A DNA stretch of 25,655 nucleotides, taken from contig CDMY01000739.1 of the NCBI GenBank assembly GCA_001179505.1, positions 1 through 25,655 of the forward strand, read 5' to 3'. Shown here in pieces: positions 17,673 to 25,655 of the stretch (position 1 is its first letter; each line of letters begins with the position of its first letter). Made by a program: the position numbers and the translations under genes. Source of the stretch: Vitrella brassicaformis CCMP3155. Lineage: Eukaryota; Protista; Chromerida. The notes under the pieces are model-generated. The model was given only the letters and a program-made list of their open reading frames with translations, made no database searches and had not been told where the DNA came from.

Positions 17673-19552
17673 ACACAGCTCGTCTCATTCAACACAAAGA
17701 CAACCCATACACAGTCGAGCATACGTTTGTTATGCATCTCCTTCCGCTTTCGGGTACATTACTTTATCATTCACTGTCAAACGTACACAAAAGCACGAAG
17801 CTTCTTGATGCATTGCCGTGTCCATAGTATGTAGAAGCAACACGTCACGGCCACTGATTGCCTTCCTCTGTGATCAAACGTTTTCCGTTGTTCGGGGCAT
17901 TATTGAGTACCTATACCAGACGTCAAATCTACTGCTTGGAGCCCTTTTTTTCCCCTCTCCGGTTGGGGCTCCAGGAGTGCCCTGAATGTCACCTATCAAG
18001 GTTTACAACAACAACACACAAGAGCAACAACAACAACAACCAAACAAAAAAAAGGGGAGGAAGGGAGAGAGGGCAGAATACATAAGCTGAAACGGCGCAA
18101 TGTGCATGGTCTCGGTGAAAGGTTGGCGATGCTATTCTGTCAACCTGCGGAGACTGTACATGCAAGGATAGCGGCGACATGCACGAGCCAACACGCGGAC
18201 ATGATGCGAGCACACGTCGCGGCGACCATTCCTGGTAGCCGCCCCTCGAGAGCCCCCTCTCGAACCCCGCATTCTTGATCTTTTCGGTACAGCGATTCCA
18301 GCCATCCCCGTCCCTTTGCAATTCGTCTGACGATCGTGGACGGTGGACGTGCCTACTTGATTGTTCAAGGGGGAAGCCAAACCAACCAATCAAGACGTCA
18401 AGACGTGCCGAGGAGCAGACAGGGAGAGCTTTGTCGTGCATTGCGGCATCAATTAGCTGTCGCGACTGTGTGCGTCAGTCATGTCAGAGCCTTCCGTTGT
18501 CGACGGATGTGATTCAGTCCTGTGTGTGACTTCGTTGTCGTTGCATCGTGAGTGTCTCCATCCTAGTATCAATCAATAAGCACCAGTAGAGCACCGAGTA
18601 GCTTTTTCTTTCGTGAGCACCCTGGTGGAAGTAAAACAACCACAACAAAGCACGACAATACTACGGGTTTTTTTTTAACACGAACAGCGCTCATCCACCG
18701 CCGCAAGCAATGAGGGACATGCACACGAGGCACGTGGCTTGCGGTCACAATATCCTGCACGAGACACGTGTCACATGGTCTGTATCGGCTCATGGTGGAA
18801 GGACAGCTGAGGGAGAGTGCGAAAGGCTCAGTCTGCAGCATGAACCCTGAAAATCCGGCACAACCAAATAGAGTAAAAGCAACCCACGCAAAGAAGACAG
18901 CAAACAAGCGAAGGAGTGAAGAAGGAAGACTCAACAAGCGCCATCGGCATCGGCCAAAGCGGCACATGCTCTCGAAGGAAGCAGGAAGAGATGCAGCGGC
19001 TGCTCGAGCGGATGGAGGCCGCAGAGAAGGCGAGGATCCTGTGAGGCCATGGGTGCCGGCCAACAAGAACGCGCGGGAGTAGGTTGGTACAGGGGCATCA
19101 GTAGAGATGGCTTCTGGAACAGCGACATATCTGAAACAGCCAACAGACACACACACACACACACACGCCGACTGACCCGTGAAACTCACTGCGACGCTAA
19201 ACACACATACATATTCTGGAATACACAGCATTTTTTCAAATGGACATGTCCCAGAATGGAACACGTGGGAAGAAGAGAGAGCTCTTTACACACATCATGG
19301 AGAGAGGGGCCATTGCCGGTAGTTTCGTGGAGAGTCTTCACACGATACTGCGGTGGTTGGTCGTTAGCTCGAAAACAGGAGAACACAATAGGCACGTAGC
19401 AGGGTCTCTATCAAGAAGGATTTTACGATACAAACATGTGATCATAAGCCTATACGAATAATGGAATTCTCGACGATCAAACTGATAGTGTGGACAGTGA
19501 CTCCCCTTAGAGCAGTGGAGGACTACGTCTCAGGATGGGATGCGGAGTTGAT

Positions 19553-22500
19553 TCAGCCTTCGTCGGCGCAAAGCTGGTAGTGCCGAGCCCTTGAGTGTCC
19601 GCCAGTGCTCCCTATATAAGGCAGGATACCAACGCCAGTAGAATCCCTCCGCTCGCCATCAAGGTCCAAGGGGCGGTGGAACGTTCGCAAGCTCTCTTCA
19701 GTTCCTCGCATAGCGTAGCCTCCACTGATAAGCTGCGATCTGGCCATCTGACATGACAAACTCAAGCTCTTCTTCTTGCTCCTGCCGTCCTGGGTCGCCC
19801 TTTCAGATGGATCGGGCATGGGCAGGTCGAAGTCCCGGTCCTTCTGTTTTCTCTTCGACTGGGTGCGATTGCTCGGCGTGCAAACTACATTGTAGTAGTC
19901 ATGGTCGACCTGTCGCGTCTTCCAAGGTCGCATACTGCTGCCCATCAGACAAGCACCAGAGGTGAATGGCTGATGCAACTCTTGGTTCCAGGGCCATTGG
20001 GTCTTTTGCTGATACGAAAGCGCCGCGCTGGACGTATCCATTGCCACAGGTTTTGTCGCAACATGAGAATTGATTGGATACTCGCCGCCTCGAGATGCAA
20101 GAGACATCCTGGAAGGAACAAATGTGTAGACAAGAGCAGCGTGAAGGACAAACCCCATCCTCGTACTCCTTTTCACCTGTCAAGTCGAATTGTAAACCCT
20201 CCACCGATCCCCCCGTCTATTTCTTGCCCCCTGCAGGGACTTTCTACCCTTACGTAATGCGGAGGGGGAGGTGACGCCGCGCCGTGAGCGGCGGGAGGAA
20301 CATGACGGTTGTTGGCAATGCGACGAGGAGGCGTTTCGCCTGGGGAGCGATAGGACGGATTCTTGCGAGTACTGGAGCGCCGCTGGTCATACGACGACGG
20401 AGCCACAGCCTCCATACGCTGTTTATGTGCAAAAACAGTAGATACCGTTTATGACGCCACTGTCGTCTCTGGCCTACGTTGCCGTTGGCGTTAGCGGGGA
20501 GGTGGTCCTCCCTTCCATTCCTCAGATGCGGACGTCGACGGTTGCTACTTCCTCCTCCTGGTCCCGCTGACGGGGGACTTGGGCTTCTGAAAGCCAGACG
20601 CAGGCGAAAACCCGAAAGACGTCTTCGTGTCTCATGCGCTCCTGAGTTCCTGCTCGCCTTTGTTCAGGTGTTGGTGGGACATGGCAATGCGCACCACGAT
20701 TAAGGACAGTCGGTGAGCGCTGGTGGTAGCCGTGTGTGGGAGTCGCATGTAGGCTTTCAAAGCTGGGTCCGAGTGGCGGTTGGGCTGGGGACTGGCACAG
20801 TGTTTGGGACAGCACGGGCGACACCCTTGGAGGGCTTGCGCGGAAGGCGCCACAACCGCCAGATTGATGTGGCTATATGCGATAGGCAAGGCCTTGACAG
20901 TCGAATGTACAGTTGTGTCCTTGTGTGTGAAGAACCAACCTGTCTGGTCCCGGTCGTGGCCTTGGCCGATGCTGCGGACACCGTGCGACTTCGCGATTCT
21001 GAAAGGCGACAAATTACAACTTGGCAGAAGTGAGGGCCAGTCATTGTCCTGCACCATCCAAAAGGCTGTCACACATGACAGATTTGAACCAGGGATCTTT
21101 GAGAGCCTGCTGAGCTGCACAAGATCTTACATTCAGGCAAAGAAAGTGAGAGTGCATCCGCGGTCGCTTCCTCACCAGGGAGTCTCTGCGAGGGGTCCAT
21201 GGCAAGCATCCGCTTCATAAATGATAGGGCCTCAGCAGACGCTTTACCGCGATACCTTACACCAAAGCACCGACAGGCAAGTGACACTGCACTGGTTTTC
21301 TGGTCACAGTGCAACCCTCGCATACAGCGAACCGGCCACACCTCTTCTCAAGGGTCTCTGGGCCGCCAAGATCGGGAAACTGCATCCCAAAGAATCTTGG
21401 GTTTCGCTTGAAGCGGTCTTGCTGTGCCGGAGTCAGCGTCCCCATAACCTGAAAGAAAATGTGACTCAGTTCATGTCGCATTTGCAGATGTCTATACCTT
21501 TTGTATGATGAAAAGCTGATCCATCTCAGATTCACCCGGGAAGAGAGGGTTACCATCTATCAGTTCTCCCGTGATGCAACCTGAAATGGCATCAGTGGAA
21601 AACCGACCATGGTCGCCGACGTGTCCCCTCTTATTCTTCGCCTACCCACCGATGGCCCACAGATCGACCTCCTTTCCGTAGGTGGTGTCACCCAGCAAGA
21701 GCTCCGGGGCGCGGTACCTGGACAAAAGACGACTCATGGTGATTCTTTTCAGATACCGAAGAGGCCTACTGACCATCTTGTAGCGACATAGTCGGTCAGT
21801 GGTCCTGGCTTGAGGGGCATCTGACGAGCGAAACCGAAGTCGCAGAGCTTCAGCGTCAATGTGGAGCTACAAAGCAGTCAAAACGACAGAAGCACAAATG
21901 GGCACGCACTTGAGCGTATTCTGAGCCTACGGGTCGACGAGCAGGTTTTCGGGCTTGATATCGCGGTGAATGGTGTTGTGCTGATGGCAATATGCGATGG
22001 CATTGAGTAGCTGCCAAATGCAGTACTTCACCTTCTCCAGCTACATCAAACACAGCACACTCCGCTGGCTGCCTTCACTTCCCTCTTACCTCAAGCCCCT
22101 CCGGGTGCATTTCTAGGAACTCCAGCAGGTTCTTCTCGACGTACTCAAAGACAAGATAGAGTTTTCCCTTCCTTGAAGGGAGAGAGACGTAGAAGACCAT
22201 CTGTAGTGCCAGAATCCTTTTACCGCCAACCTGCGGAAAGCTTCCTTTAGCTCAACGATGTTCTCCTGCCGAAGCATCCGGAGAATCTTGACCTCGCGAA
22301 TCGTTGTCTTCTTCACCACATCGTCCTCTGCACAACATGGACACCTTTCAACCCCTTACACAAACAATATCATCACCACCTTCGCTCTCCTTGAACTTTT
22401 TAATTGCCACGACCTCTTGCGTTTCCTGCACACATGTCGCCACGTCGAGAAGGCCACACACTTATCAAACTTAGCGAAAGCCATTACCTTGTTTCGGCAT

Positions 22501-22559
22501 CGCAACACAACCCCATATGCCCCCTCACCAACAACTCCCAATACTTCATACTTATTCAT
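19553..22559 (-). CDS. CDKL5: CDKL5/LF5-like cyclin-dependent kinase-like protein, multi-exon; kinase domain ~22559-21090, 3' end uncertain
   Basis: [39 protein letters not shown]…[43 protein letters not shown]…[10 protein letters not shown]…[10 protein letters not shown]…[18 protein letters not shown]…ESEMDQL…RNPRF.G..FP…DPWF. TDY activation motif; the kinase exons splice in frame. Confidence 0.92.
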
Positions 22560-22728
22560 CACCCCGAGGAGATTGGGGAAGGGGGCTCCCTTGGGGCGCA
22601 ACACATGTGTGTTAAACTGCCGTCCCTAAACACAATACACTTTCTCAGGCCCGGTTGCAATATCCATAAGAAGAAGGGGTCAACCAACCAACACGATACC
22701 ACAAAACCTGGTGCTCCTCGAGAAGAAA
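22560..22728. promoter_or_regulatory. Putative bidirectional promoter/5'UTR interval (169 bp)
   Basis: Lies between divergent ATGs at 22559 (-) and 22729 (+). No specific motif identified. Confidence 0.45.
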
Positions 22729-22899
22729 ATGAAGCGGGCGGGTGAGGACTTCGGGGGCTTCCCGTCGGAGGAGACCATGACTGAACTGGAAAACAGTGAG
22801 CAGATCTAGCCCTGCGCCATCTCGAATCTGCATATGCCTTTTCTGTGTTGTGCCTCGCCTGTGTCTGTCAGTCCAGAAGGAGCTGTTCAAGCTGGTAGG

Positions 22900-24219
22900 T
22901 GTCAGACAGCCATCAGCCAGGCCCCATTTCATGACTTTATTGCTGCCCTGCTCAGCTATGCTGGTCATCGCACTCTCATTTCCAATGCGGGCCCCATTAG
23001 TGACGCTGTTTTGCGTGATCTTCATGTCGGCCTCACCAAGGCATACTACTCTGACACACTGGTCGCACGATGGGATTCGTCTATTCGCGCTAATCATGCC
23101 GTCTTGCGTGAAGCGCCATCTCTTCCTCCACCCCTCTCCCTTGCTCCACTGCCTCTGTGTCTGTTGCCGTGGCGGGGTTACACTAGGGCTACTGCTCGCA
23201 GTCGTGTTCTCTTCCTTGCACGACAATGCCTTTTCACTGCCTCAGCCTTCTTCAATCATCACTTCCCTCACACATTCCCGGTGGTTCGCCGGGTTTTTGC
23301 CTCTCGTAATCAGCGTTGCTCCCTTGATCGAAATTGTCTTGTCTATCTGCCTACATATGTGCCTGCATTCCTTCGTAATTTCATTCTTGAATCTGGTCAG
23401 GATTGGCTTCATCGTCTTATCCACCCCCTGTCCACCTTCCCGTGTTATTTTTCTCTACCCTCTGCTGAGCGCCGTGTGTTGTTTTCATTCCGCACCGGCA
23501 CCTATACTTGTGCTGTCACAGATGGCCGGCTGACTCATCGGCCTCGTCTTCTACGCTTCTGCCCATTCTGCGCTGCTACTTGTCCTCCCTCCAGCTGGCC
23601 CATGCCGGGGCTTGTGCCACCTGTTGAGGATGAGCTGCATGTGCTTTTCTATTGCCCGCTCTATAGCTCTCCACGTAGGGAGGTCTTCCGTGTTGTTCGC
23701 ATGTATGGTCTGACTGCACCGGATGGTGTGGTGTATTTTTGGTGGGATCTTGCTCATTGTGATGCCCTGGTGTTCGCATGGTCATTGCTTACTTCGCGCT
23801 CTCTCCCTGTGCAACGTGCGTTGGCTCAGTTTCTTCTGATGGCCGTGGCTTCTCGCAAGCGATGGCTTTCTTTGCACCCATCAGCTTAGTTTCCTTGATA
23901 TGACAAACGCTTTTATGGACAGAGCATCTGCCCTCAGGGGCCGGGACCTCGGTGTCCGTTAACGAACGAACGAACGAACGAACGAACGATGACTGCCAGT
24001 GATCGTGCGAGCTTGGACTCGGGACTTGGTTGTGATGCGCATTCATATCCTTTCGGGTCGAGTATAAGCTTGGACTCGGGACTTGGTTGTGATGCGCATT
24101 CATATCCTTTCGGGTCGATATAGAGTAGGATATGAATGCGCATCACAACCAAGCCCGAGTCCAAGCTCGCACGATCACTGGCAGTCACGAAATGGGGCCT
24201 GGCTGATGGCTGTCTGACA
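22900..24219. mobile_element. Foldback MITE (262 bp when empty), TGT...ACA termini, ~93-bp TIRs, 5-bp TSD GTAGG; interrupted by a LINE
   Basis: TSD GTAGG at 22895-22899 and 24220-24224. Left arm 22900-22936 plus 23995-24051 is the reverse complement of 24127-24219 (1 substitution, 1 indel). Internal 52-bp duplication at 24010-24061 and 24067-24118. Confidence 0.88.
22937..23988 (+). mobile_element. 5'-truncated LINE (RTEX/L2-like C-terminal CCHC region) with (AACG)n tail and 6-bp TSD ATGACT
   Basis: RRVLFSFRTGT…GRLTHRPRLLRFCPFC…VEDELHVLFYCPLYSSPR; stop at 23889; (AACG)7 tail at 23961-23988; ATGACT at 22931-22936 and 23989-23994. Confidence 0.9.
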
Positions 24220-24559
24220 GTAGGAACGACCGACACTCAGAGGATCACATGCATCTGATGGTTCGTGCCCTCCTCCAGGACGACGAGTGTGCCAAGGAGC
24301 AGATGGAAGTCCAGAAGAAATACGGTACGGTACGTGCACGACCCTCCGCTTTAGCCAATCCACGTGTGTCTTGGTATGGTTGCGTACACACCCCCCTGTC
24401 AGACAAACAGAAGAAGCCTGCAGTCGCGGTTTATCACCTCAATCACTTGCCCTGAATGAATGCCTCAGGGCAGGTACAGAGAAGCGATGCATGCAGACAT
24501 ATGACATTGAGCTCCTGTGTGTACCGAGGCACAGGCTTCATGTAGGCAAACGTGAGCGC

Positions 24560-25350: not shown

Positions 25351-25655
25351 CGGGTAGTGGAGATCTGCAGATCTAGAGTCATACATGTATGACGCAGTTA
25401 AGTAGATACATGAACGGGCGACGAAGTTCGTCTAAGCATCAGTTCGCATCAAGCAAGCCGAGGGGAACAATACATGCAAAGACACTGGACAACGCTCGTT
25501 GACTGTAAAGAAATGCATGTCGCACGCTGCTAACAAGCGCGAGACACGCAACACGAGATACACATTCGCAAAATCCAGATGCAGCCAGCCACCTCACAGC
25601 CCCGGAGCGGGGCTGGTGTGTGGCCTGTATGGCCCGCGGCTGACGAAGTCCTCGG

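Follow-up and report, generated by a model that had tools for sequence, protein, structure and literature searches.

Introners are transposons that create introns, often with one of the splice sites taken from their own target-site duplication (PMC9860276, PMC12130899), and in the alveolate Amoebophrya there are elements flanked by terminal inverted repeats (TIRs) that have homology to copia or gypsy retrotransposons (PMC12130899). Ginger elements have TGTNR ends and duplications of 4-5 bp, they insert at CCGG/CCGT or RTATAY, and they have an integrase-like transposase but no reverse transcriptase (PMC2836005). Here we describe an inverted-repeat element of the chromerid Vitrella brassicaformis CCMP3155 that resembles all of these in some respect. 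It lies in the second intron of a NAP/SET-like gene fragment on scaffold C739 (CDMY01000739.1), the whole of which, 25,655 bp, is called the window below; the searches covered the entire assembly of 72,700,666 bp in 1064 scaffolds. A preliminary description took the element for a miniature inverted-repeat transposable element (MITE) whose family might prefer splice donors. It is likely that it is a fold-back copia long terminal repeat (LTR), which was inserted like a cDNA with a duplication of 5 bp and was later hit by another retroelement, and that its match to the splice donor arose by chance.

The outer inverted arms of the element (22900-22936 and 24183-24219) are 37 nt each and 97% complementary. 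The window contains two occurrences of a 19-mer taken from the arm, compared to 0.02 expected by chance. Directly outside both arms stands GTAGG, at 22895-22899 and at 24220-24224, the two copies being separated by 1320 bp. Exon 2 ends with ...AAGCTG at 22894, so that the left copy makes up intron positions +1 to +5, and 59 nt separate 24220 from the first base of exon 3 at 24279. The paralogous locus C418:35570-35910 (L079 1571-1910) is a diverged duplicate of this region, and the two flanks of the element both align to it, overlapping by exactly GTAGG. C418 holds GTAGG only once (L079 1726-1730), at the start of a 59-nt GT...AG intron. C418 is therefore an empty paralogous site, and the 5-bp repeat in the window is a genuine target-site duplication that falls on a real donor. 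In this the preliminary description was right: the duplication is identical to the first five bases of the intron, and a second copy of the donor stands at 24220, 59 nt before exon 3, while the upstream donor has been regenerated. The rest of the original intron, with its polypyrimidine tract and CAG acceptor, is found at 24225-24278 on the plus strand. Without the element the intron is identical to that of C418 (L079 1726-1784) at 57 of 59 positions, more than in the other introns and exon 2 (see below); this may reflect constraint on a sequence within the intron, or else a short tract of gene conversion that stops at the insertion.

Judged by the coding sequence, the donor is genuine in C418. 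Reading through the C418 intron meets a stop codon. In two other NAP genes a single unbroken exon corresponds collinearly to the peptides of exons 2 and 3 (23 residues, QK to KY), without any change in spacing. The junction between the two exons was placed by this collinearity, read by eye, as exons of 8 and 15 codons are too short for a separate search. Another donor of the C418 gene (L079 2020-2030) reads GTAGGGTAGGG.

The sequence of the element ends was also found as direct repeats about 6 kb apart on scaffolds C359 and C817. These units, 5.9-6.4 kb long, encode Retrotran_gag_2, Pol_BBD, rve, SH3_retrovirus and RVT_2 on one strand and in copia order (E 3e-31 for RVT_2), in copies that are frameshifted. 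The LTR is 148 bp long, starts with TGTCAG and ends with CTGACA, and thus has TG...CA ends. A run of purines with GGGGG at its end, the polypurine tract (PPT), adjoins the 3' LTR, and TGGGCGC..., the primer binding site (PBS), follows directly after the 5' LTR. There are three LTR pairs, with identities of 100%, 97.2% and 98.6% within the pairs and 87-93% between them, and all three are flanked by perfect 5-bp duplications, which read CATTG, ACGGC and GGGCA on the plus strand of the contigs, or CAATG, GCCGT and TGCCC in the orientation of the element. The partners of each pair are located on different scaffolds (C359/C494, C817/C359 and C630/C817), and evidently the assembly has joined three near-identical copies wrongly through their interiors. 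Based on LTR identity and duplications, the pieces of these copies are C359:72440-78319, C817:6537-12983, C630:350-496 and C494:1-78. When the flanks of copy A are rejoined, an open frame of 405 codons runs across the insertion site, which supports the pairing of the LTRs and makes it probable that copy A was inserted in an exon. Pfam gave no match to either half of this frame. With gag, protease, integrase and reverse transcriptase in copia order, TG...CA ends, PBS, PPT and 5-bp duplications, the source element can be assigned from its sequence to the Ty1/copia LTR retrotransposons.

A nested long interspersed nuclear element (LINE) of 1053 bp makes up four fifths of the length of the window element. 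Without it, what remains is a palindrome of 262 bp, derived from the 5' approximately 100 nt of the 148-bp copia LTR; when 22937-23994 are removed, the left LTR arm reads through unbroken. The first part of this arm (22900-22936, plus strand) aligns to LTR positions 1-37, which is the 5' end of U3 and starts with TGTCAG. The second part (23995-24061, plus strand) aligns to LTR positions ~38-103 and contains a putative promoter word, TGCGAGCT, at 24006-24013. Further inwards, at 24067-24118 (plus strand), there is a 52-nt tandem duplicate of 24010-24061 (repeat family D1, 100% identical); this extra copy next to the centre arose secondarily, once the element had been inserted. The palindrome turns round at 24119-24126 as seen by alignment and folding, and the turn coincides with the LTR's own 8-bp hairpin, ATATCCTT / AAGGATAT. 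The right arm (24127-24219, minus strand) runs inverted from LTR position ~95 to 1 and ends with ...CTGACA. The arms are 97.9% identical to each other and 95-96.5% identical to the copia LTR, the values for the LTR of copy B being 95.5% and 94.8%. LTR positions ~104-148, the U5 end, are absent from the element, there is no internal region, and the second arm is inverted. Folded as DNA, the right-hand 230 nt reach -86.5 kcal/mol as compared to -31.5 for shuffled sequences (z = -15.9). Rfam gave only sub-threshold matches to generic hairpins in 22600-24500.

Whole-genome pattern and DNA searches found only two further palindromes of this kind, and the other matches were LTRs of full copia elements. 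The palindrome at C491:39011-39251 is 241 bp long and consists of LTR positions 1-97 joined to a full inverted LTR, with the flanks CTGAG and CTGAT. The one at C244:32927-33006 (L071 528-607) is an 80-bp, perfect-looking hairpin with the duplication TGATC. It derives from a diverged LTR, about 80% identical to the studied family, of which it uses the first ~40 nt, and it turns at a small natural inverted repeat near position 40. The source element of the C244 hairpin was not found in the genome searches. Matches to the arm 19-mer with two mismatches on C182, C434, C468, C504, C674, C732, C946 and C529 were either unrelated sequences or another repeat, the homology of which crosses the supposed end, and they contributed no extra duplications.

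The duplications of the copia family and its closest relative speak directly to the suggestion that splice donors are targeted. It is conceivable that the element, or the integrase that inserts it, prefers 5' splice-site sequences, and that the match between duplication and donor is the signature of such targeting. The duplication is exactly the GTAGG that starts the intron, donors of the GTAGG type recur in the NAP gene, and introners show that a transposon can obtain a splice site from its duplication (PMC9860276). None of the other five duplications (CATTG, ACGGC, GGGCA, CTGAG/CTGAT and TGATC) begins with GT on either strand, however, and one of these insertions lies in the 405-codon open frame. 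Besides, the intron predates the insertion, so none was created, and the family is far too small for an introner family. We therefore give targeting next to no credence. Tabulating the duplications of other copies was a check that had been named beforehand, and its outcome goes against a donor preference as far as six sites can test it; the caution that a single site cannot show a preference holds for the GTAGG match taken alone.

The size of the coincidence can be estimated. For Vitrella, the published figures (PMC4501334 and its supplement) are 22,817 genes, a median intron number of 6, and 16.4 Mb of intronic and 9.2 Mb of intergenic DNA. From these figures, the chance that a duplication exactly matches intron positions +1 to +5 is about 0.5% for each non-exonic insertion, and a few per cent for six insertions. 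Within the 59-nt intron, the donor match is one of perhaps 40-55 positions, and the coincidence was picked after the fact in a very large scan. We read the match as a coincidence. Relaxed selection on a gene fragment may have favoured it, and so may survivorship, since an insertion at the 5' edge of an intron is seldom harmless and one whose duplication restores the donor is among the exceptions.

The origin of the palindrome may be sought in the reverse transcription of the copia element. In retroviruses and retrotransposons, a DNA strand that starts at LTR position 1 is the well-established product of plus-strand strong-stop synthesis. The copia family could yield an aberrant DNA that contains LTR sequence only, running from position 1 to ~103, turning at the LTR hairpin and going back from ~95 to 1. 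Such a DNA would arise by snap-back, in which the strand bends over at the LTR hairpin and serves as its own template, or by a switch of the polymerase onto the nascent strand at this point. The product would have U3 ends at both termini, each finishing with CA-3', which is the substrate that integrase needs. Integrase would then insert the palindrome like normal cDNA and give the usual 5-bp duplication of the family; all three palindromes, in the window, C491 and C244, carry 5-bp duplications, although that of C491 is imperfect. In the window, the insertion hit exactly positions +1 to +5 of the 59-nt intron of a duplicated NAP/SET-like 5' fragment, and its duplication restored the donor. The left LTR arm was afterwards entered by a LINE with a tendency to insert 14-19 nt from TGCGAGCT, which added 1053 bp. 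It is possible, but in our view doubtful, that copia reverse transcription in Vitrella makes such snap-back LTR DNAs recurrently at small natural hairpins, and that integrase inserts these U3-U3 palindromes with normal duplications.

Several observations weigh against the fold-back origin with a chance donor match. With six duplications only, a weak donor preference is still compatible with the data, and a GT can be read beside two of the sites: at C244 from the G before TGATC, and at C491 from the last G of the duplication and the following T. The open frames around these two sites showed nothing convincing, and no coding evidence at either GT. No tRNA matching the PBS was identified; the search with the PBS complement gave about 200 loose matches. 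Both the reverse-transcription step and the action of integrase on U3-U3 DNA in Vitrella are steps that we infer. The C491 palindrome is less regular than could be wished, as its duplication agrees at four of five bases and its centre is asymmetric, with arm 1-97 against a full LTR, unlike what simple snap-back predicts. In addition, the window and C491 palindromes have arms that agree with each other at 96-98% and depart in common ways from all three sampled LTR pairs, and these two could descend from one palindromic ancestor that moved twice.

This last point also speaks for a low-copy, non-autonomous element that moves as a palindrome, with its TGTCAG ends recognised by the copia integrase or by a Ginger-type, integrase-derived transposase, so that the window and C491 would be two transpositions of one ancestor. 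The two sites have 5-bp duplications, TGTNR ends with duplications of 4-5 bp are the signature of Ginger (PMC2836005), and the TIR-flanked copia- or gypsy-like elements of Amoebophrya come from a related alveolate (PMC12130899). Yet there are only two copies and one distant relative of 80 bp, and the centres differ among all three palindromes. The palindrome has neither PBS nor PPT, no transposase was seen, and the only coding relatives carry reverse transcriptase. To our knowledge there is no mechanism by which an integrase of the retroviral type excises integrated DNA, which also counts against a moving palindrome, and we find this explanation unlikely.

It could also be imagined that a normal solo LTR or full element was inserted and then rearranged in place to a palindrome, for instance by replication slippage at the LTR hairpin. 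Change in place did occur, as the 52-nt tandem duplication next to the centre testifies, and the hairpin could promote template switching in DNA replication too. But the right-hand duplication adjoins the inverted start of U3 and not the end of U5, so the event would have to replace U5 exactly up to the duplication, and it would have to be repeated at C491 and C244, each time with the 5-bp duplication retained. Since the right-hand duplication adjoins an inverted U3 start at each locus, we regard rearrangement of a solo LTR in place as very unlikely. The fold-back origin during reverse transcription is thus the explanation that we prefer, with the reservations given above.

The insertion changes the upstream donor from GTAGGA to GTAGGT, which is still canonical, and the length of the intron from 59 to 1384 nt. 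In the predicted fold of the RNA the outer arms pair with each other, as do the inner arms, and this would bring the donor near to the remaining 54 nt of the intron. The donor would at the same time be placed at the foot of a very stable stem, and its recognition could equally be hindered. The second GTAGG is preceded by ACA and not by CTG, and it has no upstream acceptor as partner. Exonisation or recursive splicing through this copy, which had been proposed, is possible on paper only.

The gene in which the element lies was described as a NAP gene, and this is only partly correct. Exons 1-3 match a NAP-like gene on C418, and the window holds only a 5' fragment of such a gene, which lacks PF00956. 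Exon 1 (22729-22795, plus strand; ATG at 22729, donor GTGAGC) is identical to the paralog at 51 of 52 positions over 22744-22795. Exon 2 (22872-22894, plus strand) comprises 8 codons and has four differences, and exon 3 (24279-24324, plus strand; DDECAKEQMEVQKKY) has two, all of them synonymous. The homology to C418 ends about 20 nt into exon 4, of which a remnant is left (24403-24424, plus strand, from the comparison with the paralog) with an in-frame stop at 24452-24454. A whole-genome profile search with PF00956, the NAP domain, gave no match on the contig of the window. In C418, exon 4 alone matches PF00956 with E 3.6e-5 and 23.6 bits, which is under the cut-off of 28.6 bits for the whole protein, and the later exons read like NAP. 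From its sequence, the C418 gene appears to be an intact NAP/SET-like gene. When the assembly was searched with the DNA of the paralog, the missing 3' part was matched only in C418, and the copy in the window is a truncated 5' duplicate only. The seven exon differences between the copies, with codons read by eye, comprise six synonymous and one non-synonymous, which counts against a long-dead pseudogene.

The argument that the insertion is neutral through clean splicing is weakened by the state of this gene copy. As the host is a truncated duplicate, the survival of the insertion is weak evidence that the element is cleanly spliced out.

Other parts of the duplicated region have diverged to varying degrees. 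Identity between the paralogs is only about 75% in introns 1 and 3 of the NAP-like gene, where the alignments contain many gaps, and 4 of the 23 bases of exon 2 have changed. The duplication common to the window and C418 (window 19034-22604, minus strand, and C418:32522-35289) also takes in the 5' exons of a protein-kinase-like gene, and here both copies show large insertions or deletions when compared with their counterpart. The end of the scaffold (25397-25655) is a repeat of ~255 bp, for which 137 candidate sites in the genome were listed in a first pass; the 40 sites that were scored had identities of 80-90%.

The nested LINE (22937-23989, plus strand), delimited by its matches in the genome, is a 5'-truncated 3' end with an open frame to a stop at 23887-23889 and an (AACG)n tail at ~23960-23989. 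Its own duplication, TGACT, is read at 22932-22936 on the left and at 23990-23994 on the right. The LINE is matched at more than 40 places in the genome. These copies begin at differing points but share the 3' end, and longer ones extend upstream of the point where the window copy starts. Two of the longer copies (L036 and L037) match RVT_1, with E-values of 4.5e-7 and 9.6e-7 that lie close to the Pfam cut-off, on either side of it; Pfam found no domain in the window fragment itself. The LINE was inserted in the left LTR arm 16 nt before TGCGAGCT. Among 14 distinct 3' junctions, window included, the word GCGAGCT or its complement is found 6-19 nt after the tail in seven, where ~0.3% is expected per junction, and in five of these seven it stands 14-19 nt after the tail (the loci besides the window are L039, L042, L043, L044, L059 and L062). 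Given this frequency of the word near the tail, the insertion of the LINE inside the palindrome was probably targeted and not random. A LINE family that lands at a set distance from TGCGAGCT supports the idea that some factor bound at the word guides integration.

Among the known systems, MITEs and foldback class II elements, including Ginger, have several features in common with the element. It has terminal inverted repeats (37 nt in the outer arms, ~95 nt without the LINE), a 5-bp target-site duplication, a length of 262 bp without the LINE, TGTCA ends, and a transcript that would form a hairpin. Nevertheless, the MITE label cannot be kept. Neither a multi-copy family of like structure nor a matching DNA transposon was found, the nested LINE accounts for four fifths of the element, and the arms derive from an LTR and have the same ends as the LTRs of elements that encode gag, integrase and RVT_2. 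The TGTCA ends agree with the TGTNR of Ginger, but this pattern is common to LTR retrotransposons and does not discriminate. Ginger was rejected, as the relatives encode reverse transcriptase and as GTAGG, CATTG, ACGGC, GGGCA, CTGAG and TGATC fit neither of its targets. A MITE-looking sequence with long inverted ends, a duplication and a hairpin can thus be a by-product of an LTR retrotransposon, which matters for the annotation of repeats in protists.

With introners, the element shares that its duplication supplies a working-looking GT donor, by an inverted-repeat element in a gene of an aquatic alveolate. An introner can be dismissed, because the empty paralog C418 already has the 59-nt intron, no new intron has been formed, and there are no repeated genic copies. 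Splice-site targeting would have been a new strategy for a transposon, and the evidence here does not support it. We may speculate that a fold-back LTR could also be a route to the TIR-flanked, copia- or gypsy-like introners of Amoebophrya. A limited literature search gave no description of integrated palindromic or fold-back LTRs. Fold-back LTR insertions at several loci of one small, transposon-poor genome hint at a recurrent error of reverse transcription that is tolerated by integrase, and recurrent snap-back, if true, would offer LTR retroelements a natural and repeatable way to give rise to TIR-flanked elements that look like MITEs.

The nested piece is much like other 5'-truncated LINE insertions, which also have variable truncation and a common 3' end, and it shares with them the (AACG)n tail, the short duplication and RVT_1 in the longer copies; it differs in that its family is associated with a fixed distance to TGCGAGCT. 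The palindrome itself can be compared with Ty1/copia elements and their solo LTRs. The arms are LTR sequence with TG...CA ends and a 5-bp duplication, and full elements are present in the same genome. A solo LTR is ruled out by the absence of LTR positions ~104-148 and by the inverted second arm, and the window element differs from one in consisting of two partial LTR copies, inverted, with their U3 ends outward. Unusual as it is, the element can be explained as a by-product of a copia retrotransposon, into which a TGCGAGCT-associated LINE was inserted and which lies in a truncated gene duplicate.

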